Origin: Caecitellus pseudoparvulus
Taxonomy: Eukaryota; Protista; Bigyra: Bicosoecida
NCBI GenBank assembly: GCA_965644315.1
Contig: CBFFRQ010000039.1
Location: forward strand, 62,001-126,000
DNA length: 64,000 nucleotides
Direction of reading: 5' to 3'
The notes beneath the pieces are model-generated. The model worked only from the letters and a program-made list of their open reading frames with translations. It searched no databases and was not told where the DNA came from. How positions within the stretch are numbered: the stretch's first letter is position 1; the number at the start of each line of letters is the position of its first letter. A program made the position numbers and the translations under genes. This document shows positions 1 to 57,384 of this stretch, in pieces.

Positions 1-3000
1 GAAGCCTCATTCTCCATCTCTGAGAACGCCGCGGCCTGCAACCTTTGCAAGCCTTCCTTCTTCGGGACGGGCGTCGTGGGTGCCCCCAGCTTCGAGGAAG
101 CGTGTGCTGAGTGCCCGCCTGGACGCAGCACGCGTGGAGAAGGCATGAAGGATGAAGGCGAATGTGGCGAGTGCGGGGTGGGAACGTACCGCAAGGCGGG
201 CATGGCAGCGTGCGAGGAGTGCAGTGATGGCACTTTCTCCTCCGATGGATTTGAGTCTTGCTCTGCTTGTCCGGCTGGGTGGTACGGGCGTGGGGACGGC
301 CTTGGGCCTGGGTACAAGGATGCCTGTGCACCTTGCGCAGCAGGGAAGGCGTCCACGACAAAGGGAGCGCCACACGCCAGCACTTGCACCGCTTGTGGTA
401 CGGGCCGTTGGTCAAGTGAAGGCGCCACCACTTGCGTAGCTTGCGGGGCTGGCACGTACCGCGACCCATCCAGTGGTTGCCAGCCTTGTCCAGCTGGGCA
501 GTACAGCAGCGGTGGCAAGGACACATGCACGCTGTGCCCCAATGGGCGATACCGCACCTCAACTGGAGGTAAGGTGGAAGGTGACTGCACTGCCTGTCCT
601 GCTGGACGATACGGGCTGGGGACTGGGAAGTCGTCGCTTGCAGCTGGCTGCGGCGCCTGCGCAGATGGCGCCTGGTCTGCTTCTGGTGCTGCTAGCTGCT
701 ACGACTGCCCACCAGGAAAGTACCAGACAGGCGCTGGCTGCATCCCGTGCGGCAAAGGCACGTACCAAGATGAGTCTAAGACGCTCTCGTGCAAGGATTG
801 CCCTGTTGGCCGCCACAACACCATTCTGGGGCGAAGTACACTGGATGCCTGCTACTGGTGCCCAGCTGGCAGGTTCACCGGCTCTTCGACTGAACCGTAC
901 ATACGCAGCACTGGCCGATCATTCTGCACTGATTGCCTGGCTGGGCGGTATCGTGCGGTGGACGAGGGCGGCAACTGCATCGCATGTGGCAATGGCGAGT
1001 ACCAGAGCAGCACCGGAGCCACAGAGTGCACGGCTTGCCCTGTGGGACGCTACCATGCGACGTCCCAGAGGACTGCGCTGTCTCAGTGTGCGCTCTGTGC
1101 GCCTGGGAAGTACACTGGCTCCGTTCGCAGCAGCACGTGCAGCTCGTGTGACCCTGGTTCGTTTGCCAGCGAGTCTGGTATGTCAACTTGCTCGCTTTGT
1201 GCCGCCGGACTGTATGCGAGCAGTGGTGGGGTGGCGGCTTGTACGAAGTGTCCGGTGGGCAAGTTTATGGACGGCCTGGGCGCCACCACTTGCACTTCAT
1301 GTCCCTCTGGGCGGTACCAGGACGGGCTTGGCAGCACGGTGTGCAAGGCTTGCCCAGCTGGTCGGCACCGAGACACTCGGCTCGCAGCACACGCTGGTGC
1401 GACACAGTGCTACGCGTGCGCGCCAGGCAGTTTCACGTCTCGAGAAGGCGTGCACATCACTTGCTCAGCGTGCACGCCAGGCTTCCACCAGGCAGACTGG
1501 GGTCAGACTGGCTGTAACACGTGCAACAGGGGCAAACACTCGCCCGGTTCAGGAGCATCTCTGTGCACGCTTTGCCCGGCCGGTCGGTACGAAGACAGCA
1601 CCACCAGTGCTGTGATTGAGTGCAAGACGTGCCCCAAGGGGCGCAAGTGCAGCGGCACTGGGCTGACTGAAGCACAGAAGTGCCCCCTTGGCCAGCACCA
1701 GCCCTTGACAGGGCAAACAGTCTGCAACGCCTGCGGCGTTGGGACGTACGCTGGCAGCACAGGGCTTGTGGACTGCACTGCGTGCTCGAAGGGACAGTTC
1801 CAGTCTGAGACGGGGCAGTCTCTTTGCGTGGACTGCGAAGGCGGCCGATACTCGGGCACAACCGGGCAGTCCACCTGTGATGCCTGTCCTGCAGGCAAGC
1901 ATGGAGGGACAGGGCTGTCTATATGCCAGAACTGCCAAGCTGGCTGGGCACAAGGCAGCACTGGCAAGTCGACATGCGTGCTGTGTGGTGCAGGCAAGTT
2001 CCAGGGCGGGTCTGGGGCATCGGTGTGCGAAGCATGTGCGCCTGGGACAGTGAGCGGTGCGCCAGTTTTCTTCATCCCCACCACCTGGAACCTTGCATGC
2101 AGTGAATGTGAAGCGGGGAAGTCTCAGCCAAACTCTGAGAAGGCAACCTGCGAGCCATGCGCGTCGGGCAAGTTCCAGCCTTCGACGGGCAAGAGCGAGT
2201 GCCTCGACTGCCGACGCGGGGCGTACATGTCGAGCACAGGCGCGACAGCCTGTGCCACGTGTCCTGTGGGGCGAGCGACTCACTTGACAGGGCAGAGCGC
2301 CTGCTCCACGTGCCCTGCTGGGAGGTACGCGCTCGACGCGGCCAAGGGCGACTTGTCCAAGTCGTACCTGAACTCGTACTGCATGTGGTGTGGCCCAGGC
2401 ACGATGTCCCTTGGCAACACTGGGAAGTCAACTGGCATTCTCGCAGGGGCCGTGTCTGAGGCCGTGCCTGGCTGGTCTGTCCTCGGTGTGGACGGTGTGT
2501 TCGACACGAAACACTCACTGGCAACTCCTGCCGTCATCGCGGCCTCTCGGCCGCCCAATGAAGCCAAGGGGCTGTGGCGTCTGCCACTGAGTGAGGCAGC
2601 TGCACTCACAAGCATGGCACATGTTACACCAGAGATGGGCAAGGTGATGCAAGCTGTGCTGGGCGGTGAGGGGTGCCTCATGTGCACTCCGGGCAAGGCC
2701 ACGTCGGGCTGGAGCCAAGGTTCCTGCACGAACTGTGAGCCAGGATTGTACCAGCCAGGGCACGGCCACCGCTTCTGCAACGCCTGCCCGAGTGGAAAGT
2801 ACTCTGCAGAGAAGACAATCGGCGGTGTGTCGCGAGGCAGCACAGTTGGGGCAACGGCATGCTGGGACTGCCCTGCTGGTCGCATGCAGGTGATGCGGGG
2901 CATGAGCACCTGCTCCAGGTGCAGCCCTGGCTTCTTCAGCTCAGGTGTGGGCCAGGAGGTTTGCTCCCCCTGCCCTGCTGGTCGCTTCACGGGCGGCTTC

Positions 3001-5493
3001 GGGGCCACTGAGTGCGACCGGTGCCCGGCTGGCAAGAGCAACCTGGTCGTGGGGCAGAGCGTTTGCGTGGACTGCTCCCCCGGGACGTACGCAGCAGGCT
3101 CTGGCACGAAGCTGTGCACACTGTGCTCCCCAGGCACTTTCACGGATGCCACTGGCGTGTCGGCCTGCAGTCAGTGTGGGCCAGGCAGGTACACCGGTTC
3201 TGCAGGCCGAACAGAGTGCCAATTGTGCCCTGCAGGCAAACACTCCAGTCTGATGGCCACGCACAGCATCGGAGCCAGCATTTGCCAGGACTGCGCGAGA
3301 GGACGGTACAGCCCCGAGGCAGGTGCTGTGCAGTGTACGAAGGCGACCCCAGGCAGGTACGTGTCAGGGCGAGGGCAGAGCACCACACAGGCTTGCCCTG
3401 TTGGAAGGTTCAGTCGGGAACACGCCGCGGCTCCCAGCGAGGGTGCACTCGTTCCACCTTCATCCGCTCCCATGCCAGGCGGCGTGGGCGTGCCTGTCAT
3501 GGACTCCTCTGTCACTTGTGAGCTGTGCCATGCTGGCAAGTACTGTGATGCACCAGGTATGACACTCAGCGACGCAAAGCTGTGCAAGGCTGGGCGGTGG
3601 GGGAGGCCAGGGGCGACTTCGCCAGCTTGCCATGGGGCCTGTCCAGCTGGTCGCATGTGCCCAGACGGCACGGCTGAAGGTGCTTCTCTGCCCTGCACTG
3701 CGGGCACGTTCTGCCCGGTGGGAACAGGCGCGACGGGGCCACGAGTGACTCCTGGCTTCTACTCGTACGACTCGGACGCTGGCAGTGCCAGTACCACAGG
3801 GGGAACTGATCAAGCCCGTTGCCCGCCTGGGCATTTCTGTGTCGATGGCAGGCTTGCCAAGTGCCCTGCTGGGAGATACGAGTCCAAGTTCGGCAAGACT
3901 GCGTGCAAGAACCTCTGTTCCCCGGGCTTCTTCTGTCCAGAAGGCTCGACGCAGGATCGGATGCAGGCCTGTGCAGCTGGCAAGGACTCGCCTCAAGAAT
4001 GGTACTGCCCAGAGGGCGTGTCAATACCCATGCGCACGTCAGACTACACTGCAGCTTCTTCTCCAGGACAGTACACCCCAGCCCACGAACCACCCACTCA
4101 GCGCACCCAGTCCACGGTTTGCTCAGGCACGACAGCGTGCTGGAAAGGCGTGCAGTACCCTAGACTAACTTTCGCAGATGACGTGTGCAAGAAAGGCTTC
4201 GGCTCCATCACTGCAACAGTCCCCAGCCTGGTGGGCGAGTCCACTATCACCATGGAACCCAAGACCTTGACTCTGCAAGAGCGGATGTCTGGGCCGCTGC
4301 CCTCTCCCATGGGTGCTAGCCTGCTGAGCTTCTCGATGGGCGACTTCCGGCCAGCGCCAGGCTGCAAAGCAAGCAACCCGTTTGCAGTTTCTGCGGCCGG
4401 CTTGCTGACGATGTCAGGAGCCTTATCCCCGCTTGAGTGCCCCTTCATAGGGGTGCGGATCACTGCACTTGCAACAAGCGTCAAGGCAACGTGTGACGTT
4501 GTTGTCCGCATGCAAACTGGCGAGAGTGCGGTTCGCGAGTCTGCTGTGAGCATCGCAGCGGGGTCAGGACACGTCTGCTACATTTTACCGCCAGCCTCAT
4601 CCGGATCCTTGGGCGGCAACTTGATCTGCCTGGCAAGTGGCGGGGATTCTACTCGCGAGAAAACGCTGGCGGCTCCCTCGTCTTTGTATGGATGGATGCA
4701 AGTGGCAGCAGGCGCGGCTCATGTCTGCGGTTTGGATGCCGCGGGCATCGTGAAGTGCTTTGGGCGCCAGCAAGTGTACAGCCGCGGCACGGAGCATGTG
4801 TGGAGCACCCCAACAGGTTGGGGGCGTGCCCGCAGTATTTCTGCGGGGGAGGATTTCACCTGCGTCATCGCTGTTGGAGTGAAGAAGGAGGATAGAATGG
4901 AGGGTGCGGGGCGCCTGCACTGCGTTGGATCCAACGAGGAGCTCGGCTCTGCTTGGGCGGCGGCACAGCCAAGCTTCATGGACAAGCAGATCGCGGCAGT
5001 TTCCGTGGGCGGCAGCGCAGTTTGCGCTATTGCCTCCGGCGACGGCAGCCTCGCTTGCTTCGGCACGTCTGGCGCTTCCCGCTTGCTGGCCAACGTACCG
5101 GCTGGCGCATTCAGCCAAGTCTCTGTGGGGCTCACTGGCAATGCCTGTGGTCTGCGGCGATCTGACTCCAAACTGCTGTGCTGGGGTGCACAGTGGTCCG
5201 TTGGTACCATGGAGTATCCGGCCGCTTTTTCCGCCGTGGCTGTGGGGGAGGACTGGATCTGTGGCGTGTTGCAGAGCAGCAGCAGGCTGCAGTGCTACGG
5301 GAACATCATCCCGCGGGTCTTCGCCTCCTACAGCAACATCCCCACAGAGCCAGTTGTCCAAGTGGCGGCTGGCAAGGACATGCTCTGCGTCACGCGAACG
5401 TCCGGCTTGGTGCAGTGCTTTGGGCGCAGCCAGGTCAGCGCAAGTGCAGTGTCGCGGCTGGGCGAGGGTGTGCTTGCTTTGCTGCCCATGTGA
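1..5493 (+). CDS. Giant cysteine-rich repeat (GCC2/GCC3, ephrin-receptor/TNFR-like CxxCxxG repeats) extracellular protein with C-terminal RCC1/BLIP-II-like 7-bladed beta-propeller; 5' truncated by window edge
   Basis: Frame 1 is open from base 1 (EASFSISENAAACNLCKP...), so the ORF-track GTG at 76 is not the true start. Dozens of CxxCPxGxY/F repeats run to about 4150. Seven repeats of type (S/Q/A)(V/I)xxGxxhxCx(L/I) follow at about 4540-5430. Stop TGA at 5493. Confidence 0.85.
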   Translation, partial: EASFSISENAAACNLCKPSFFGTGVVGAPSFEEACAECPPGRSTRGEGMKDEGECGECGVGTYRKAGMAACEECSDGTFSSDGFESCSACPAGWYGRGDGLGPGYKDACAPCAAGKASTTKGAPHASTCTACGTGRWSSEGATTCVACGAGTYRDPSSGCQPCPAGQYSSGGKDTCTLCPNGRYRTSTGGKVEGDCTACPAGRYGLGTGKSSLAAGCGACADGAWSASGAASCYDCPPGKYQTGAGCIPCGKGTYQDESKTLSCKDCPVGRHNTILGRSTLDACYWCPAGRFTGSSTEPYIRSTGRSFCTDCLAGRYRAVDEGGNCIACGNGEYQSSTGATECTACPVGRYHATSQRTALSQCALCAPGKYTGSVRSSTCSSCDPGSFASESGMSTCSLCAAGLYASSGGVAACTKCPVGKFMDGLGATTCTSCPSGRYQDGLGSTVCKACPAGRHRDTRLAAHAGATQCYACAPGSFTSREGVHITCSACTPGFHQADWGQTGCNTCNRGKHSPGSGASLCTLCPAGRYEDSTTSAVIECKTCPKGRKCSGTGLTEAQKCPLGQHQPLTGQTVCNACGVGTYAGSTGLVDCTACSKGQFQSETGQSLCVDCEGGRYSGTTGQSTCDACPAGKHGGTGLSICQNCQAGWAQGSTGKSTCVLCGAGKFQGGSGASVCEACAPGTVSGAPVFFIPTTWNLACSECEAGKSQPNSEKATCEPCASGKFQPSTGKSECLDCRRGAYMSSTGATACATCPVGRATHLTGQSACSTCPAGRYALDAAKGDLSKSYLNSYCMWCGPGTMSLGNTGKSTGILAGAVSEAVPGWSVLGVDGVFDTKHSLATPAVIAASRPPNEAKGLWRLPLSEAAALTSMAHVTPEMGKVMQAVLGGEGCLMCTPGKATSGWSQGSCTNCEPGLYQPGHGHRFCNACPSGKYSAEKTIGGVSRGSTVGATACWDCPAGRMQVMRGMSTCSRCSPGFFSSGVGQEVCSPCPAGRFTGGFGATECDRCPAGKSNLVVGQSVCVDCSPGTYAAGSGTKLCTLCSPGTFTDATGVSACSQCGPGRYTGSAGRTECQLCPAGKHSSLMATHSIGASICQDCARGRYSPEAGAVQCTKATPGRYVSGRGQSTTQACPVGRFSREHAAAPSEGALVPPSSAPMPGGVGVPVMDSSVTCELCHAGKYCDAPGMTLSDAKLCKAGRWGRPGATSPACHGACPAGRMCPDGTAEGASLPCTAGTFCPVGTGATGPRVTPGFYSYDSDAGSASTTGGTDQARCPPGHFCVDGRLAKCPAGRYESKFGKTACKNLCSPGFFCPEGSTQDRMQACAAGKDSPQEWYCPEGVSIPMRTSDYTAASSPGQYTPAHEPPTQRTQSTVCSGTTACWKGVQYPRLTFADDVCKKGFGSITATVPSLVGESTITMEPKTLTLQERMSGPLPSPMGASLLSFSMGDFRPAPGCKASNPFAVSAAGLLTMSGALSPLECPFIGVRITALATSVKATCDVVVRMQTGESAVRESAVSIAAGSGHVCYILPPASSGSLGGNLICLASGGDSTREKTLAAPSSLYGWMQVAAGAAHVCGLDAAGIVKCFGRQQVYSRGTEHVWSTPTGWGRARSISAGEDFTCVIAVGVKKEDRMEGAGRLHCVGSNEELGSAWAAAQPSFMDKQIAAVSVGGSAVCAIASGDGSLACFGTSGASRLLANVPAGAFSQVSVGLTGNACGLRRSDSKLLCWGAQWSVGTMEYPAAFSAVAVGEDWICGVLQSSSRLQCYGNIIPRVFASYSNIPTEPVVQVAAGKDMLCVTRTSGLVQCFGRSQVSASAVSRLGEGVLALLPM

Positions 5494-49333: not shown

Positions 49334-50578
49334 TGTGGCTCTGTGGTTCGGCTTGAGAAGGTAGCCCGGCGAGGGAGTGTGCAACCGACGGCTTGTGCGG
49401 CATGTAAGGGAAGGGGGTGGTTAAAGTGAGCAGTGAAGTTGATTGCAAGTGGGAACGCACGCCGTTTGCGCCAGGTCTTGGCTGTGCGTGGCAGGTGCTG
49501 GACCTTGCTGTCTCCTGCATCACGACGGGTAGCGCCCGAGCCCTGTGTGATGCAGCTGCGGGCGCCTCTTGTGTCGTGGAGGATGCCAGCGGGATGTTGT
49601 GTGTGGCATTGTGACTGGACCTTCGACTGGGATGCATTGCCTGCACTGCCATCACCTGCTGCTGTCGCGCTGCGCACCTGAAGCGTCACCCGGACTGACT
49701 CCCTTGCAGCAGATTGCTGACGTGACCAGGCGCGAAAGCTCCGGAGAGACCCCACACAGCTGGGTCGCCTGTGCTGCAAAGTCAAGTCCGAGTGCCTGCT
49801 CAGCTTCGTCACGCGCTTGGGTCGGGTTGAGGGTGCACAGGCGGTGGCCGTGACAGCGCACAACACCCCGGCACTTGAGCAGGGCTTGCGCTGATCGCAA
49901 GCTGTCTGGGGCCTGTGGCGCTACGCTGTTCGGGGATGAATGTTTCCCTCTCTCCCATAGCGCGTGGGGACACCACCTCGCGTTGGACGCGAGTCTTGTC
50001 CCGCCTGTGGCTGCAAACGTGACCAACCTGCTCAAGACGATGCACGAGGGACTACGGGCTTCGTCTGAGAGCTGCAAAGTCGAGCAGGGCGGTGGGGAGT
50101 GTGCCAGCACCAAGCCACTGGGAGACATCAACCCACAATTGATGACCATGGCCAATGATGAGCTGCCCTTGCTCGGGCGCCCAGCCATGCACTCGCGAAG
50201 GAGCAAATGTGAGTTAGCGTTGAAGCCAGACCTGGCTGTGGAGTAGCGCAAGCAGGCAATGTCGAGACGTGGGGGCAAATACTTCCGTGAGTACATGTAC
50301 ACGCGACGAAATGGGGTACAGCATGCGTGAACGCTCACCCTGGGTCGTTGTGCACGTCTGAGGGGGGGCTTCACACCCCTCACGCTCAGCGCAGCAGCAC
50401 TCTCGCTGCCAACGGCAATCACCATGCCACACCAAACTCCCCATCACGTCCATCGCCACCTTCGCACTCGGCCCATCATACTTCATGTGCAGCGCATCGT
50501 GGTCCTCGGAGGTTGCTTGCACTTGCTTGTGCCTGGCTGGGCACAGTCGGCGCTGGCGTTGCGTGGTGTGTGGCGGCT

Positions 50579-50588
50579 CAATTTCCGC
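50579..50588. promoter_or_regulatory. CAATTTCCGC motif, ~180 nt upstream of the NTPase-nuclease ATG
   Basis: Exact 10-mer that recurs near several gene starts. Confidence 0.4.
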
Positions 50589-50766
50589 ACTGCACCATTT
50601 GCAAGCAGCGTAGACGTCGATTCCGAAGCTGCGCGTCCCAGTTGTGCAGTCGAGGTGACTGGAAAACACAGAGAACAAGCAGTGAGTGCAGGTTTGCGAC
50701 GTGCAACGCCACCCTACGGGGATGCGTGTGGCTGAACGGCCACGTTCCGGGCTGTGACTCACAGGC

Positions 50767-53625
50767 ATGGCGGCAGCAGAAGTACCCACTGAGGCTGGAG
50801 CCAGCGAGCGCAAGAAAGGGCCGTTTGAGAAGCTGTGCAGGTCTGGGTTGCGCGTGAGCCGCCCAGCCGGGGTGCCAAAGGAACATGAAGAACTCTGGAA
50901 GAAGATGGTGCTCGACAAGGCAAGTCCTTTCCTGCCCATGGACCACTTGATTGAAGCCTTCACAATACTAGCATCAATGACAGACAGCTTGCATGCGTCA
51001 GCACCAACACCGCGGACCTTTTTGTTCACCGGGCAGAAGGGCATTGGGAAGTCCCACCTGTTCCGCAAGTTTGCCAAACACGTCGGAGAACTCAACAAGA
51101 AAGCAGCGGGTGGAAGGCTCACCATTTGCTGCTGCACTGATCTTCAAGACCACAGTTCCTCAGAGTATGAAAACTTTCATGAGTGGCTGTTCCATGAGAT
51201 CGCTGACAAGCTCGATGAACTGAAACGACACCAAGAAGTGGAAGAAGTGCTCCGCAACCTCGCCACCCATGCTGCAGGCTCGACGAACGACAACGTAAGA
51301 AGGAAGCACCTCCCAGCCATAATGAACTTGCGTGATAGCTCCAAGGATCTGTCGCCCGAGGTGCGCGAAGTAATTTCAAGTGCCAGAGAGTTTGGCCGGT
51401 TGGCCATCGCGAGCGCATTGCTGAAGAACTTCAACATCGCGGTCATCGTGATCGTTGATGAAGCAGAGCACCTCTACCAGGAACGCAAGTTCGACTTCGC
51501 AACCACCAAACGATGGCAGGATCAAATGGAGGGTGCTCTTCGTTTGGTTGAGCCCTCCATTGGCATGGTGGTCTGTGCGAGCTTCCAACGCGCCCGACAG
51601 CTGTTCCTGTCTGACGGATCACCCCATGACTTTCCCCCAGAGTACACACATGTGTCACTGCGAGGAAACTGGAACAAGACCAAGTTCAAAAGCAGGCGCC
51701 TAGGGGGTGCCATGTGGACGGAGACGTCACTCAAGGCTTTTCTGCTCACACACACGTGCAGGCAGGTGGACCCTTCATTCACACTATACAGAGGGAAAAC
51801 AAAGAAGCAGCAGCCTGGCGCAGCTGTGGACGCAGCACAGGAGGCATCAAGTGCAGTGGCGAAGGAGGAGAGGCAGCCGTCAGAAGCAGCGCTGGAAATG
51901 GCGAGGAAGCTTGACGCGGTGTTCCTGCAGCGCTGTAAGGGGGAGGATGAGATGAGCGACGCGGAAAAGCTCAAGTCCTCCCTGGAGCAGGCCCTGGAGC
52001 TGTATGGGCACACACCCCGGAACTTGGCCGATGCTGCATCCTTTCACTTGCGCTACTGGACGCCACCATCTCCATGGCCAGTACCCAAGGGCCCCGAGGT
52101 CATGGAGGACCTGTACCAGGCAAGCGAAGACCACGAGCAGGTGATGCGCTCATTCCTTGCGCTCTTGCCCACTGCCAAAAGGGCAGAGCTGCCAAGAGCC
52201 ACGGCGCTCGGATTCCGCTCCACGCGCTACGCCGTACTAAGAGGCAAGCTCACGAGGAAGTTGAAGGAGCCTTCTGAGCAGTCGCCCGCAGCAGCAGCAG
52301 GTGATGGCCCAGCACAGGGGCCAGCTACAACCACACCAGCCGCCACAAGGCTTATTGACAGCGCAATTGATGAGGGTTGGCTGGTGGAGCACGGGAAAGT
52401 CTTAGGTCTAGCCAGTCTTGGGGTGTACCGCATGTATTCGCGTGGAAAGGTGCACTTCCAGGTCATGAGGTGGATGCGGTTCAACGGATTCGGGCAGGAA
52501 GCCGAGCTGCCCATTACCCGCGCCCTGGCGAGGATGCCAGACCAAGACGGGGATGTCCTTGTGAAAGTCAGCTGCGCCTTGGCGAGGATGCCAGACCAAG
52601 ACGGGGATGACCTTGCAGAAGACGAAGATGGAGGAGAAGAGAGCAGCGAAGGTGGAGAAGAAGAGAGCAGCGAAGGCGAAGCAGATCCCCCCAAGCAAGC
52701 CGTCAAGGCCAGCAACAGCGACACCGAAGGCGGGAAGCTGGCGGGGGTGCGCATGACAGTCGTGACAGGCCGCACAGCAGACCCGCCTGCACAAGCGGCT
52801 GCACCAGCGGAGAGTGCTGGACCACCACACGCCGCAGCGGGAGCTGGCGGAGCTGATGGTGGAGGCCAGGCAGTCGGGGCTGAGGCAGATTGGGGTGCAC
52901 GTGCACGGGCTGCGTACGAGGCGCTTAAGCAGGTTCATGAGAGTCTGTGGGAGTACTTGGCTCTCCGCAAGGGTTCATTCTGGATGAAGGAGCTCCCAGA
53001 TGTCTACGGTGGCGACGTGATTCGGGTGTCCTATGAAGTGAAGGACGGCGTGCTAGCTGTGTGGATCATGCGTGTGCAGGTGAAGCGAGCCAACCAGGAG
53101 ACACTGAAGAAAGGGGACAAGAGCAAAGCGGGAGCTGCCGCGGTGCGGACGGCAGTGGAAGGCTTGATGGGTGTGGAGCCGTATGGCAGAGCGAAGCGGG
53201 AGGACATTGAGCGGAAGCACAAGCCCGCTGTGCGTGCTGTGGGTGACTTGATTGCTGCCGCGAGATTGCTGTACAACCAGCCCAAACTAAGGCCTGATCA
53301 GATGCCAGCATGGGACAGGCTCTTCCAGGCCTACGTCGGGGGGGAGAAGTTTCACGTTGAGGATGGCGGCGCCATGATTGCCTTGACGCACACAGTCCCA
53401 GACGGCATGCGAGAGCATGTGGAGGGGCAGCTGGGCATCCGCATTGTGGACGGCACCAACCTGCGGGGGCACTGGGATATCCTGCAGAAAGCATGCGATG
53501 AGGAGGGGGTATACTTGGAGAATGCTGGCGCCAAACCAGAAGAGGCAGCGGGGTCAAGTCGGCCACGTACGGAGCAAGACAAACTTGACGCGATGTTTGA
53601 AGAGTTCAAGGGAAAGGAGGCGTGA
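50767..53625 (+). CDS. STAND-like P-loop NTPase + winged helix + PD-(D/E)xK (Mrr/REase-like) nuclease; Crinkler/CR-type architecture; intronless
   Basis: Walker A FLFTGQKGIGKS (51031-51054), Walker B VIVIVDE (~51457), sensor-like VVCAS, GxP-like LYGHTPRNL (~52006), wHTH-like LIDSAIDEGWLVE. Nuclease motifs PDVYGGD...IMRVQVK (~52996-53085) and IALT...IRIVDGTNL. GC is lower than host genes (30/60 at 51181-51240). Confidence 0.75.
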   Translation: MAAAEVPTEAGASERKKGPFEKLCRSGLRVSRPAGVPKEHEELWKKMVLDKASPFLPMDHLIEAFTILASMTDSLHASAPTPRTFLFTGQKGIGKSHLFRKFAKHVGELNKKAAGGRLTICCCTDLQDHSSSEYENFHEWLFHEIADKLDELKRHQEVEEVLRNLATHAAGSTNDNVRRKHLPAIMNLRDSSKDLSPEVREVISSAREFGRLAIASALLKNFNIAVIVIVDEAEHLYQERKFDFATTKRWQDQMEGALRLVEPSIGMVVCASFQRARQLFLSDGSPHDFPPEYTHVSLRGNWNKTKFKSRRLGGAMWTETSLKAFLLTHTCRQVDPSFTLYRGKTKKQQPGAAVDAAQEASSAVAKEERQPSEAALEMARKLDAVFLQRCKGEDEMSDAEKLKSSLEQALELYGHTPRNLADAASFHLRYWTPPSPWPVPKGPEVMEDLYQASEDHEQVMRSFLALLPTAKRAELPRATALGFRSTRYAVLRGKLTRKLKEPSEQSPAAAAGDGPAQGPATTTPAATRLIDSAIDEGWLVEHGKVLGLASLGVYRMYSRGKVHFQVMRWMRFNGFGQEAELPITRALARMPDQDGDVLVKVSCALARMPDQDGDDLAEDEDGGEESSEGGEEESSEGEADPPKQAVKASNSDTEGGKLAGVRMTVVTGRTADPPAQAAAPAESAGPPHAAAGAGGADGGGQAVGAEADWGARARAAYEALKQVHESLWEYLALRKGSFWMKELPDVYGGDVIRVSYEVKDGVLAVWIMRVQVKRANQETLKKGDKSKAGAAAVRTAVEGLMGVEPYGRAKREDIERKHKPAVRAVGDLIAAARLLYNQPKLRPDQMPAWDRLFQAYVGGEKFHVEDGGAMIALTHTVPDGMREHVEGQLGIRIVDGTNLRGHWDILQKACDEEGVYLENAGAKPEEAAGSSRPRTEQDKLDAMFEEFKGKEA
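52520..52680 (+). repeat. Internal tandem duplications in the NTPase-nuclease gene (54-nt period ALARMPDQDGD x2; GGEE(E)SSE x2)
   Basis: gcgccYtggcgaggatgccagaccaagacggggatgWccttg at 52520 and 52574; gaagagagcagcgaagg twice at about 52635-52677. Confidence 0.9.
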
Positions 53626-53629
53626 GACG

Positions 53630-55810
53630 AAACGACTCAAGGAATGCAGTGCCGTGAGCACGGAGTCAAAAGTGCTGCAAAACAACTCCAGAAGGCTCGA
53701 GCTTGGTGCCTCGAAAGAACATTCAAAAGCACCGTATCGAGGAAGAAGAACACTGCAGATAGATGCAACACCCTGCATAGAACACTGACCAGGAGCGAAG
53801 AACCCAACACTGGCTGAACGAGTGACATCTCGACTACCACTCAAGACATGACTACACTGCAAGCCAGTTGCACTTGCAAGTGAAAACCCGCTGGCGTTGG
53901 GCATTCTTTGGGTAAGGGGCCTTCTGACAGGAGAAACGTTGACGAAATGTGTTCCAGTTTAGGTTGAGAACTCTAGTGCTTGAGCGGAAGAAAAACGAAA
54001 AGTGCAATCTCAGTCACTGACTTTGTTGCCATGTCGAAACCGAATCATTGTAGCCTTCCTGTGACCGGATTTTACATTCGCTGGTACTTTTGACGCTTGT
54101 CAGACTACGCAGTTGGAGTCTACTTTTGGCCATTCTGGCAATCAGACGAGAAACGAAAGCAGCTCTGTGCCTGGTTCAAAGCGAGCCCAAGCGTACAGTA
54201 GTCACATGCACTTGAACGGCATGTGGCGTGATGATGCATGACTTGCTTCAAAGCGGTCGGCCTTCTAAAAGTTACTTGAGCGATGCAATCCTTGAGCATT
54301 CCTTCGTTCAGCATCCCACCCCTCAGAGTTCGCCACGGGTACAAATGACATGACTACTCACAGAAATCTAATTCCTTGCCTGGTGTGTGTTGGTATACTT
54401 CGAGGAACCGGGAAAGCACTTCTTTCTCATGCTTTGCTTGCTGCGACTAGTAGACGAGCAAGACAATATCGTGTGCATTCATGTTAAGCAATGAATCAAG
54501 ATAAAGAATTACAAAAAGAAACACTTCTCAGAACTCTCCCAGGGTAGTTTGACAAGGGGACAGGGTTGCAAAATAGTCTGCCGCAGAACATTTTTGTACG
54601 GAAGGTGCTCGTTAGAGTCCGGATTATCGAATACCAGGAGTGCTTGGTGTGAGGAAAACCTTCACAGTCCTTCACAATATGTTGTACATCCTAGCTACAG
54701 AATTAAAGACGCCAAAGCTTAGAACAAGCCCATTCTGTCTGAGAATGCTCCAAAAAGTTTTGTTTAGAACGAAAAAGAAGCGCCGTTTGGCCCACTCTTG
54801 TCATTGAGTACATTGATCAGACTTTCCGTGGAAAGCCAAACAACATGCCCTTCATTGGTCACAACACTTTGTGGCTTGAGTCAAGTCAGGCAACGAGCAA
54901 GTCGATAAACTGTTGTCACAGGGATTTATCAATGAAGAAACCGAGTTGTTTAACACGGTCAGCACACATAAACGAGCATAGCTTCACAGGAAGGCAATAG
55001 CATTAGACAGGTTCCTCGTTCAAAGCAGGATGTTGCGTTCACTTCCGAGAAATCACCATCTTCACAGAACTCATTTACCAAGCACTGATCATGGTATCAG
55101 AGTAATGACAATGGTTGCAAGCAGGCACATGGAGCATCTTGAAACCGCGATATGAAGGGGTAAGGGTTCTTCGGTAAAGATTGGCGGCTTCCCGAACTAT
55201 TCAAGTACTCGTGACGCCAGTTTCCTACAGACGGACATGCGGAGGTCAGCGATCCACTTGAGCTTTCTGCTAAATGCCAGTACTCTGGCGAACGGTTCGT
55301 CTTCATTTTTATCCCTACCAAGTGTGAACTATTGCATATTGCACTTTTTCTGTCAACATGCAACCGCGCAATTTTTACACTTTGAACGAGCTGTGGCTTT
55401 CGATGTCCATTGGACTTCTATAGAGTAGACCTTTATCAAGTTTTATTCTTCAACATATCTGCGCTAGGTTGTGCGCCACTATGCATAAATTGCACTCATC
55501 CTATTGGAAGCTTGGATCAGAGCAGAACAAACTCGTTCACTACCTTCGATATCATCCGTTGAAGGTTTGAAAGAAGACTGTACTGTGCTCCTCTGTTTGA
55601 AATCTGGTAGGGTTGTGTTGATCTTTGCGCGTTGTTTTCAACAAGTCCGCGCATTCTTTGCCGGATGCAATGTAAGTCATGATTCGTAGCTGTGCGCATA
55701 GTTGTAGACTCTTTCGGTCGAATGAGATTTGTGAATTTCCATTTTGATTGCAGATCGTGTTGCGATGTGTTGAAAGAACTTCTTTGATTGATGTCTACGG
55801 GCAAGCCACC
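53630..55810. other. ~2.2-kb AT-rich, gene-free segment (GC trough)
   Basis: Sample lines count 19/60 GC (54481-54540) and 22/60 GC (54721-54780), against about 40/60 in housekeeping CDS. No credible ORF. By far the largest intergenic gap in the window. Confidence 0.85.
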
Positions 55811-55815
55811 ATACA

Positions 55816-57384
55816 CTACTGACCAACAACTCGATAGCGTGGGTAGTCTGGATGCTGCTGCAGCCACTCAACTGCCACCTCCCTGTCGGCATCGCTGAGA
55901 TGATACCTCTGTCCGCCGAGCACGTCTGCAACACGTACGCGCACGCCGCAAATGGAAAGCTCTGTTCTTCCTGCAGATTGTGCTGCTTCCGCAGCTTGCT
56001 GCAGCTCCTCCAAACTGACCCTCACGATGTTGGGACGCGGAACGTCAGGTGTTGGAGCAGGCCTGCCCAAGCGCACAGGGTCCAATGCCAGCTTGCGTGA
56101 CAAGGAGCACATCAAGTACCTTTTCGGCCGTTCACCACGTTGCCCTGGCCTAGGGTGCGGTCGTGGTGCTGGCACTGGTTGTGGCGCTGGCACTGGATGT
56201 GGCCTGTCGTACACATGGGCTGGCTCTGCAGGAGCGCCTGGAGATGAGACAACTTCTAAGTATGATGGGGGTGTTGTCCGAGGTGGCTGTGCCGGGCGGG
56301 GATGGCGGATTCGCGAGGGTCTGCGGGAGAAGTCCGGTAGGTCGTGCAGCACCAAGGTCCGTGTGCCGCCCTGGTACAGGGTGGAGTCGTGCTGTGTGAG
56401 GGCTCGGTAGTTGCGGTTGATGCGTTTGCCCCAGAGGTGTACTTTCCAAGGCCCCACTGCATCCTTATCGCTGCGGGTGCATGTTGCCCAGACAGCGGTG
56501 AAGATGCTGCTTTCCTGGGCAGGGTTCTTCCCATCTGCCGACCCGACAAAGACCAGGCGGTGTCGGGGCTGCGCTGAGACCAGAAGGGCCAGCATCTCTG
56601 CGGCAATGGTTCGGTCCACGCCTTGCTCGCCTTCTCCGAGCCTACGGCATTCGATGTAGCTTTTGTATCCGTGGGCATCCAGAATGCGCTGGATGGCAGC
56701 TTGCTCTCGCTTGTCGCCAGCGGAAGCACCCGCAAACTTGAAGGTTGGCACATCAGCGTAGTTGGGGTTCTCTGCCTTTGCTTGCTGTCGCATGCTGGCT
56801 TCTAGGGTGACAATCATGCCGCCCAGGCGCTCAATCGGCGTGTTTGTTGTGTGGAGGATGTTGGAGATGTCGAGGAAGATGTGCCATTGGTACTCGCTAT
56901 ATGGCTCGTGGGCGTTGGGGATGGGTGGGGGGCGTGCACGTAGCCACGACTTGACCTCGGCGATGATGTTGCTTGCAGTGACAGTGGACTGCTGCACATC
57001 TCCAACATTGGAAGTCACCAGTGTTTTGCACACGTAGTTTGTGTTCCCTGCTCCGTCGACCAAGGTTTCCACTCCCTGATGCAGAAGGAATGTACAGTTC
57101 CCTTGCCGTGCGATTGCTTGCAGTTCTTGCTCCTTCTCCTCAAGCTCCGCTGCGGGGAAGGGAGGGTTGTTTGGCGTGTTGCGCCAACAATGTGCGGTGC
57201 CGTAACGCAAGTAGTTGCCATACGGTCTGCAGCTTGTGCAAGCACGTGATGGGAGCAAAGCACTGTCAAACAGGCACAACAATTGAGAGGAAGACATACC
57301 AGCCACGTCGTAGGGCATGCAGATGGTCACAATGTCCGCATCGCGCGTGAGGCTGAAGCCATCCGCAGATTGCGGGGTGGCCAT
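55816..57384 (-). CDS. NYN (LabA/DUF88-type PIN-fold) ribonuclease with degenerate KH-like N-terminus, Pro-rich linker and C-terminal U-box-like domain
   Basis: NYN motifs HIFLDISNI (~56860-56880), EQGVD (~56614-56628), LVFVGSADG and WKVHLWG. U-box-like ends PKRYLMCSLSRKLALDPV...DREVAVEWLQQHP. ATG 57384; probable in-frame intron 57150-57299. Confidence 0.78.
   Translation of the reverse strand: MATPQSADGFSLTRDADIVTICMPYDVAGMSSSQLLCLFDSALLPSRACTSCRPYGNYLRYGTAHCWRNTPNNPPFPAAELEEKEQELQAIARQGNCTFLLHQGVETLVDGAGNTNYVCKTLVTSNVGDVQQSTVTASNIIAEVKSWLRARPPPIPNAHEPYSEYQWHIFLDISNILHTTNTPIERLGGMIVTLEASMRQQAKAENPNYADVPTFKFAGASAGDKREQAAIQRILDAHGYKSYIECRRLGEGEQGVDRTIAAEMLALLVSAQPRHRLVFVGSADGKNPAQESSIFTAVWATCTRSDKDAVGPWKVHLWGKRINRNYRALTQHDSTLYQGGTRTLVLHDLPDFSRRPSRIRHPRPAQPPRTTPPSYLEVVSSPGAPAEPAHVYDRPHPVPAPQPVPAPRPHPRPGQRGERPKRYLMCSLSRKLALDPVRLGRPAPTPDVPRPNIVRVSLEELQQAAEAAQSAGRTELSICGVRVRVADVLGGQRYHLSDADREVAVEWLQQHPDYPRYRVVGQ

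Follow-up and report, generated by a model that had tools for sequence, protein, structure and literature searches.

Toxicity in the Crinkler/RHS-type (CR) proteins of eukaryotes resides in the nuclease, which is under the control of the ATPase (PMC5289972). The commonest C-terminus of these proteins combines an NTPase, a helix-turn-helix (HTH) and a restriction endonuclease (REase), and it is also found in free-living eukaryotes (PMC5289972, reviewing Zhang et al. 2016). On the RNA side, stramenopiles and other eukaryotes have an RNA-regulation domain network whose proteins combine NYN/LK-nuclease, KH, dsRBD, OST-HTH and U-box (PMC2848206), and KHNYN, whose KH part is an extended di-KH domain (PMC11997328), requires ZAP. 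Here we describe a locus in a 64,000-nucleotide stretch of the genome of Caecitellus pseudoparvulus (contig CBFFRQ010000039.1; the whole stretch is called the window below), where a gene for an ATPase joined to a probable nuclease, open reading frame 1 (ORF1), converges on a NYN gene, ORF2. The first-pass annotation proposed the pair as a candidate defence island coupling a DNase to an RNase with a ubiquitin-ligase-like tail. Most likely, however, these are two unrelated genes adjacent by chance, and a coupled defence island is unsupported. What stands of the proposal is most of its domain calls and the view that ORF1 fits a role in genetic conflict, its family being multicopy, mosaic and often truncated or broken.

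ORF1 has the same three-module order as the commonest CR proteins, the ATPase and the winged helix being recognised by structure and the probable REase by motif and topology, and its family is likewise multicopy, recombining, partly decayed, eukaryotic and tied to surface-protein genes. The RHS genes of trypanosomes are also associated with surface-protein gene families. However, ORF1 has no header (Ubl/LFLAK or helical), the ATPase fold setting in after about 45 residues of the protein. In addition, no sequence link to known CR families was found among 1.84 billion representatives, and a stretch of about 100 low-complexity residues interrupts the nuclease, which has QxK instead of ExK. The likeness to Tribolium Medea1 and to CR-NTPase8 with CR-REase7 (PMC11342252) consists of an ATPase followed by an REase and of the conserved Glu of the first core strand (E742, 35/39). 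ORF1 differs from CR-REase7, CifB and Medea in the Gln at 771 and in having R, V, T or M, not His, at 774, three residues past the catalytic position, and from Medea1 in that there is no evidence of drive or killing. A STAND-like ATPase fold fused to a nuclease, in ORF1 a probable one, is shared with Avs proteins (Z 10.4 to Avs3, 8dgc), but compared with Avs and NLR-type proteins the effector of ORF1 is C-terminal, not N-terminal, and TPR or other repeat sensors are absent. The best structural matches of the ATPase and winged helix are archaeal and bacterial ATPase_2-winged helix(-DUF234) proteins, ORC/Cdc6 and TnsC (Z 13.7-14.5), DUF234 being a weak Atlas lead as well; identity to these is, however, 12-14%, and ORF1 belongs to a eukaryotic multigene family and has no transposase partner. 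ORF1 therefore falls outside the strict CR proteins (no header), CR-REase7 (no His) and Avs (no sensor, opposite order). By analogy, the most plausible models for its action are the NTPase+HTH+REase module in CR proteins and the Medea-type selfish elements. Giant viruses are a threat to free-living marine protists, about whose cell-autonomous defences little is known; a header-less, sensor-less, lineage-restricted and fast-shuffling ATPase-nuclease family is a reasonable defence candidate.

ORF2 resembles MARF1/Limkain b1, the OST-HTH-linked RNases and E3 fusions (PMC2848206) and KHNYN/N4BP1 in its predicted NYN domain, where the acidic residues are those expected, in the alpha/beta domain at its N-terminus and in a C-terminus that is ubiquitin-system-like. 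Its NYN domain resembles the PF01936 (LK/bacterial-type) family. Unlike KHNYN and N4BP1, whose tail is of the CUE/CUBAN type, ORF2 has at most one degenerate KH-like unit and its tail is U-box-like, not CUE-like. It is at best an analogue of KHNYN, and its NYN and U-box-like architecture is a small variation on the known RNA/ubiquitin domain network.

Adjacency of the two genes

The genome searched is a eukaryotic assembly of 30.6 Mb in 215 contigs (C2, C121 and so on below). Among at least 39 ATPase-nuclease loci in it, the pairing with an ORF2-type gene was seen once, and it was seen in none of six loci from related eukaryotes. No ORF2 relative was found in the 1.5-kb flanks of the fetched own-genome copies or in the fetched flanks of the six relatives' loci, in which the ATPase-nuclease gene is solitary and has different housekeeping neighbours every time. 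The repeated co-location that the first-pass annotation suggested looking for was accordingly not seen. No ATPase copy is listed on C67, where the other NYN gene found is located, or on C96, which carries a relative of the ORF2 tail. Furthermore, ORF1 lies in a segmentally duplicated block, the edges of which were placed by DNA similarity: the start at 49514 is common to six paralogous loci and the end at 53656 to four. The end is 31 nt past the ORF1 stop, so ORF2 is outside the block, 2.2 kb off. With 39 loci, and on the assumption that the genome has some 12,000 genes of which perhaps ten are NYN genes, the chance of some NYN gene adjoining some ATPase copy is estimated at roughly 5-15%.

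Overall, the locus is probably best explained as a recombining ATPase-nuclease copy beside an unrelated resident NYN gene. ORF1 would belong to a family of header-less Crinkler/RHS-type ATPase-winged-helix-nuclease genes that is lineage-specific and evolves by birth and death. A 4.14-kb piece of a tandem array would have reached the gap upstream of Sec61beta by ectopic segmental duplication, and later gene conversion with other copies would have made ORF1 mosaic. ORF2 would be a single-copy, spliced gene already at the site, and the spacer between the two genes old non-coding DNA.

The locus is real and strain-shared and not an assembly artefact, because the arrangement recurs in other strains. 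Presence across strains, which the first-pass annotation had left to be checked, was found in two independent samples (X5 and X9): both have the order ATPase end, spacer, NYN and SET gene; in each, coverage at single-copy depth spans the junction at 53656, and contigs tile the rest. A synteny scan with the SET gene gave one 31% match and is uninformative. Several points weigh against the explanation given above. The two genes are fixed as neighbours in at least two further populations (X5 and X9), which leaves room for selection on linkage. The own-genome flanks covered 1.5 kb, while ORF2 is 2.2 kb away, and the genome search for a second ORF2 reaches close relatives only. As regards ORF1 itself, the fold searches were filled by ATPase matches, and no ORF1 RNA contig was found in the one RNA run examined, which is uninformative. 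The window locus adds little over the other copies, and it calls for caution against inferring a defence island from a single adjacency.

The ATPase-nuclease protein and its family

The description of ORF1 as an NTPase-winged helix-PD-(D/E)xK protein held for the ATPase and the winged helix, and the nuclease is probable. A structure model built from 51 sequences (predicted local distance difference test, pLDDT, 83.6; predicted template modelling score, pTM, 0.82) was compared with known structures in VIA-align. Residues 44-559 match 2qen, an archaeal Walker-type ATPase (Z 14.5, 324 aligned, root mean square deviation 5.9), and ORF1 also matches Tn7 TnsC 7mbw (Z 14.1, 284 aligned, deviation 4.4), ORC/Cdc6, plant NLRs (Z 12) and Avs3. 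Walker A residues G89, G94 and K95 are invariant (34/34 rows), R275 after strand 4 is kept in 33/36, and Walker B and the GxP motif are conserved. The whole set of STAND/AAA+ initiator-like features is thus present: Walker A and B, an Arg after strand 4, a helical domain with GxP and a winged helix. In Pfam only AAA_22 and AAA_16 were matched, both sub-threshold, and PADLOC gave a single weak match (mad8, E 6e-4) in the ATPase part. No repeat sensor was found in Pfam or in the model, and there is no N-terminal header, the ATPase fold aligning from residue 44.

In the C-terminal part of the model, a helix with E580 comes first; after the disordered insert (about 100 residues) there are three strands, which hold E742, D750 and Q771-x-K773, and then helix-strand-helix-strand. 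In model and alignment this order, alpha-beta-beta-beta-alpha-beta-alpha-beta, fits a PD-(D/E)xK nuclease of the QxK type, and the candidate catalytic residues are conserved (E580 26/34, E742 35/39, D750 31/37, Q771 30/37, K773 30/37). Atlas leads for the C-terminus were Mrr_cat and DUF234 at 0.82-0.84, and Pfam and PDB profile searches with the nuclease part gave no sequence match. The nuclease call, made by motif and topology, is probable and not proven, because the Atlas values are under the 0.9 line and ATPase matches filled the fold searches. By analogy with ORC, TnsC and STAND relatives, ATP-driven oligomerisation on DNA via the AAA+ and winged-helix modules may license cutting by the C-terminal nuclease. 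The cutting could serve genetic conflict, that is, destruction of invading DNA, cell killing or selfish spread; nuclease activity, trigger and target are all predictions of this kind. Recent tandem duplications of 54 nt and 24 nt at 52520-52670 extend the acidic insert of the nuclease domain, and other strains skip part of this insert.

The own-genome loci are 32-89% identical; several are in tandem, several have stops and many end near residue 600. The nuclease part is present in 19 of them, and the copies that lack it, about half, still have frames open over about 600 codons. On C121 three units with a period of about 5.85 kb stand in tandem, and the block in the window is a partial copy of such a unit. 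In the paralogues the frame of the surface-protein gene extends about 570 codons upstream; the window block is broken inside the exon of this gene, about 180 nt upstream of the Sec61beta reading frame. The exon fragment had no match in Pfam, and the exon is found without the ATPase gene on C2, C45, C122, C13, C140 and C146. The 3' end of the block is a conserved 14-nt motif, after which most copies continue with the surface-gene unit, those of C121/C84 and C44 with low-GC tails and that of the window with the spacer. No target-site duplication, terminal repeat or transposase was found, and a cut-and-paste or rolling-circle transposon was rejected on these grounds.

The window copy is mosaic: its first 550 codons or so are nearest to C121 copy 3 (0.71-0.89), and most of the last 350 or so to C33/C86/C55 (0.90-0.98). 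Close paralogues have a mean ratio of nonsynonymous to synonymous divergence (dN/dS) of 0.21-0.62 by region, which suggests that selection is purifying but relaxed, the signal being blurred by conversion. In a family tree, obtained by a quick search on recombining sequences and good for clade spread only, own-genome copies are scattered over several clades together with outside relatives. A profile of the own-genome paralogues retrieved 48 proteins from the 1.84 billion representatives, 42 of them at E below 1e-10 and almost nothing further, the clusters of this family numbering about 45, and no relatives were found in viral contigs and JGI metagenome contigs. A traceable prokaryotic origin is unsupported: the six loci read are all eukaryotic, and matches beyond the family cover the Walker A region only. 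The window locus shows how the family moves: segmental duplication takes host gene fragments along, and there are conversion tracts and a fixed 3' junction.

The only outside ORF1 relative from word searches is a contig with the same tandem unit in GCA_905221625.1, labelled Symbiodinium sp. KB8. Its copy is 95-100% identical to C121 copy 2 over the first 600 codons, and the contig is probably that of a co-cultured protist. At C146:14104-16348 the surface-gene unit lacks the ATPase-nuclease gene and is directly followed by the post-gene tail; it is either a deletion derivative or an empty site. On C113, C119, C83 and C53, full-length copies of about 940-980 codons, one of them broken, adjoin same-strand copies of about 600 codons that lack the nuclease; these pairs could be duplicates of a single block or serve as regulator and decoy. 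On C115, C81, C99, C144 and C190 there are copies with frames open for 700-750 codons, which match in the ATPase-winged-helix half alone and may carry a different C-terminal domain.

The NYN gene

ORF2 was initially annotated as an unspliced frame of 522 aa; its product has 472 aa, because an in-frame intron is spliced out. The gene is transcribed, being covered by a polyA RNA contig that runs to 55753, into the spacer, and it is single-copy in a whole-genome search that reaches close relatives only. Sequence searches were run exon by exon. The isolated NYN domain matched Pfam PF01936 at E 0.002 and 19.1 bits against a cut-off of 24.2, the best three Atlas clusters were all NYN (0.88-0.89), and acidic residues (D172/N175, D257, D284 in unspliced numbering) are located as expected for a PIN-like fold, in which conserved Asp residues follow strands 1 and 4 and another lies in the central helix. 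These results lend some support to the NYN/PIN assignment. The KH-like domain of the first-pass annotation found no such backing: Pfam gave no KH match, about 110 residues are left ahead of the NYN domain after splicing, and the single-sequence model of exon 2 has a pLDDT of 39. ORF2 had no match among PDB sequences. Similarly, the U-box profile (PF04564) matched neither ORF2 nor its relative on C96, and the proposed ubiquitin-ligase-like tail is a likeness by eye. The tail shares 35% identity with its counterpart in the unlinked C96 gene (pairwise E 2e-13). ORF2 is best read as a predicted NYN-type RNase whose tail is U-box-like, and its most likely role is in RNA turnover or in ribonucleoprotein control of the silencing type; its RNase and E3 activities are putative.

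The tail relative on C96 is an ORF of 526 codons (1501-3081, minus strand, of the fetched locus). Judged by eye, its N-terminal part is dsRBD-like and its middle LOTUS/OST-HTH-like, Pfam being silent on both, and its end is 100 nt away from a tRNA-Ala gene. Word searches with ORF2 returned a strain copy as the only relative. The Pro-rich repeat of the ORF2 linker (56159-56194) varies in copy number, the RNA contig having 24 additional bases.

Alternative explanations and other features of the locus

The first-pass annotation placed both genes in a block of low guanine plus cytosine (GC) content. This is correct for the spacer, which has the lowest GC of the window (0.41-0.50 in 200-nt bins), whereas the genes are mildly low (0.58; 0.62-0.65 at third codon positions, GC3, against 0.70-0.78 in the neighbours), and 1-kb windows with GC 0.57-0.60 are also found at other places in the window. 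The spacer has no further match anywhere in the own genome and none in Pfam and RNase H searches, and an RNase H relic is unsupported. Stops are evenly distributed over all six frames and divergence among strains is about 2-7%. In its simplest reading the spacer is old intergenic non-coding DNA; long intergenic DNA of the relatives has a GC of 0.45-0.52 likewise. Low-GC tails also adjoin three other ATPase-nuclease copies (C121, C84 and C44), and homology of the window spacer to them was rejected (z under 4). The C121/C84 tail (2930-3213 of the fetched locus) and the C44 tail have a 280-nt homology (z 10-13) with a 38-residue translated match of 42%, and are possibly a decayed gene carried along with the family.

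A coupled defence island, in which an ATPase-gated DNase and a NYN RNase/E3 would act jointly against giant viruses or mobile DNA, agrees with the convergent adjacency of two predicted nucleases, the GC3 of both genes below that of the neighbours and the gene order kept in other strains, and the CR toxin domains do include LK/NYN nucleases (PMC5289972). We nevertheless regard it as very unlikely, given the single pairing among the loci surveyed, the position of ORF2 outside the duplicated block and the chance estimate for such neighbours. ORF2, in addition, shows little difference between strains (dN 0.006, dS 0.035) and is spliced like an ordinary gene, and the convergent genes are 2.2 kb apart, so there is no common promoter. 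It would be just as surprising if the family were a sensor-less, DNA-reading restriction/drive system that cuts near its own 3' 14-nt motif, recombines into new sites and has here been fixed and co-opted with the NYN-U-box RNase as a two-layer antiviral locus.

Alternatively, ORF1 could be selfish, a MEDEA-like toxin or a break-induced copier that spreads by DNA cutting and repair copying without host defence, with ORF2 a bystander. The solitary insertions among unrelated housekeeping genes in the relatives, the intronless coding sequence, TnsC among the nearest folds, the fixed 3' junction motif, the Medea1 layout of CR-NTPase and CR-REase (PMC11342252) and the numerous broken or truncated copies are all in line with this, which is still unlikely: the marks of transposition are missing from the block ends, the copies carry host gene fragments like segmental duplications, about half of them have lost the nuclease part yet keep their frames open, and the 5' untranslated region (UTR) intron is retained, which argues against retrotransposition. 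The spacer, for its part, could be a short regional centromere or origin, the ATPase-nuclease copy being there since such regions gather duplications. The spacer is indeed a unique, gene-free trough of 2.2 kb with the lowest GC in the window, and three other copies adjoin low-GC tails. Flanking inverted repeats were, however, not found, the homology common to the C44 and C121/C84 tails may stem from coding DNA that has decayed, and the relatives' intergenic DNA is of similar GC. This explanation, which we find rather improbable, accounts for the spacer alone and is compatible with the preferred one, a recombining copy beside an unrelated resident gene.

Table 1. Features of the ORF1-ORF2 locus (positions in the window)
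Feature	Position	Strand	Remarks
Segmentally duplicated block, 4.14 kb	49514-53656	+	Partial copy of tandem unit of about 5.85 kb (surface-protein gene fragment, leader, ATPase-nuclease gene)
Truncated exon end, multicopy FN3/Ig-like surface-protein gene family	49514-49650	+	Call by eye
Conserved upstream leader	50376-50681	+	Most likely non-coding 5' exon
Predicted 5' UTR intron, 83 nt	50682-50764	+	GTGAGT donor, branch-point-like TGAC, CAG acceptor 2 nt before ATG
ORF1, intronless coding sequence, 952 aa	50767-53625	+	ATPase, helical domain, winged helix, probable PD-(D/E)xK nuclease
ORC/Cdc6-TnsC-archaeal-ATPase-like (STAND/AAA+) NTPase and winged helix	50896-52446	+	Residues 44-559
Walker A	51031-51054	+	G89-S96
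Walker B	51448-51468	+	D231/E232
GxP motif	52003-52020	+	G414-P417-R418
Probable restriction-endonuclease-fold domain	52492-53511	+	Split by low-complexity insert (about residues 600-705)
Conserved 14-nt motif AATGCAGTGCCGTG	53643-53656	+	Paralogues diverge downstream from here
Non-coding low-GC spacer	53657-55815		GC 0.45; single-copy; right end is ORF2 3' UTR
ORF2 exon 2	55816-57149	-	Remaining N-terminal alpha/beta domain, NYN domain, proline-rich linker, U-box-like tail
U-box-like tail with insert of about 50 aa	56118-55840	-	Conserved C..DPV..G..Y....W...P pattern, U-box-like by eye
ORF2 in-frame intron, 150 nt	57150-57299	-	GT..AG; skipped in polyA RNA contig (run X18)
ORF2 exon 1	57300-57384	-	ATG at 57384

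The first-pass annotation was right about the coordinates and convergent orientation of the two ORFs and about their neighbours, a Sec61beta transmembrane exon on the left (Pfam E 2.5e-4) and a SET gene of the Rubisco-LSMT type on the right (Table 1). The limits of its block require extension, however, the duplicated unit starting earlier, in the surface-protein gene fragment. Public runs containing the window stretch are chiefly marine metagenomes and coded organisms.

The leader upstream of ORF1 is alignable even in paralogues at about 40% protein identity. The donor and acceptor of the 5' intron are kept in 12 copies, including one from another species, with lengths of 81-113 nt. The leader is read as 5' UTR and not as coding, because the frame joining it to ORF1 is closed by stops in 9/11 other copies and because leader variation is without codon bias (26/60, 26/61, 24/61). 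A coding N-terminal leader or mitochondrial presequence was rejected for the window copy on the same evidence.

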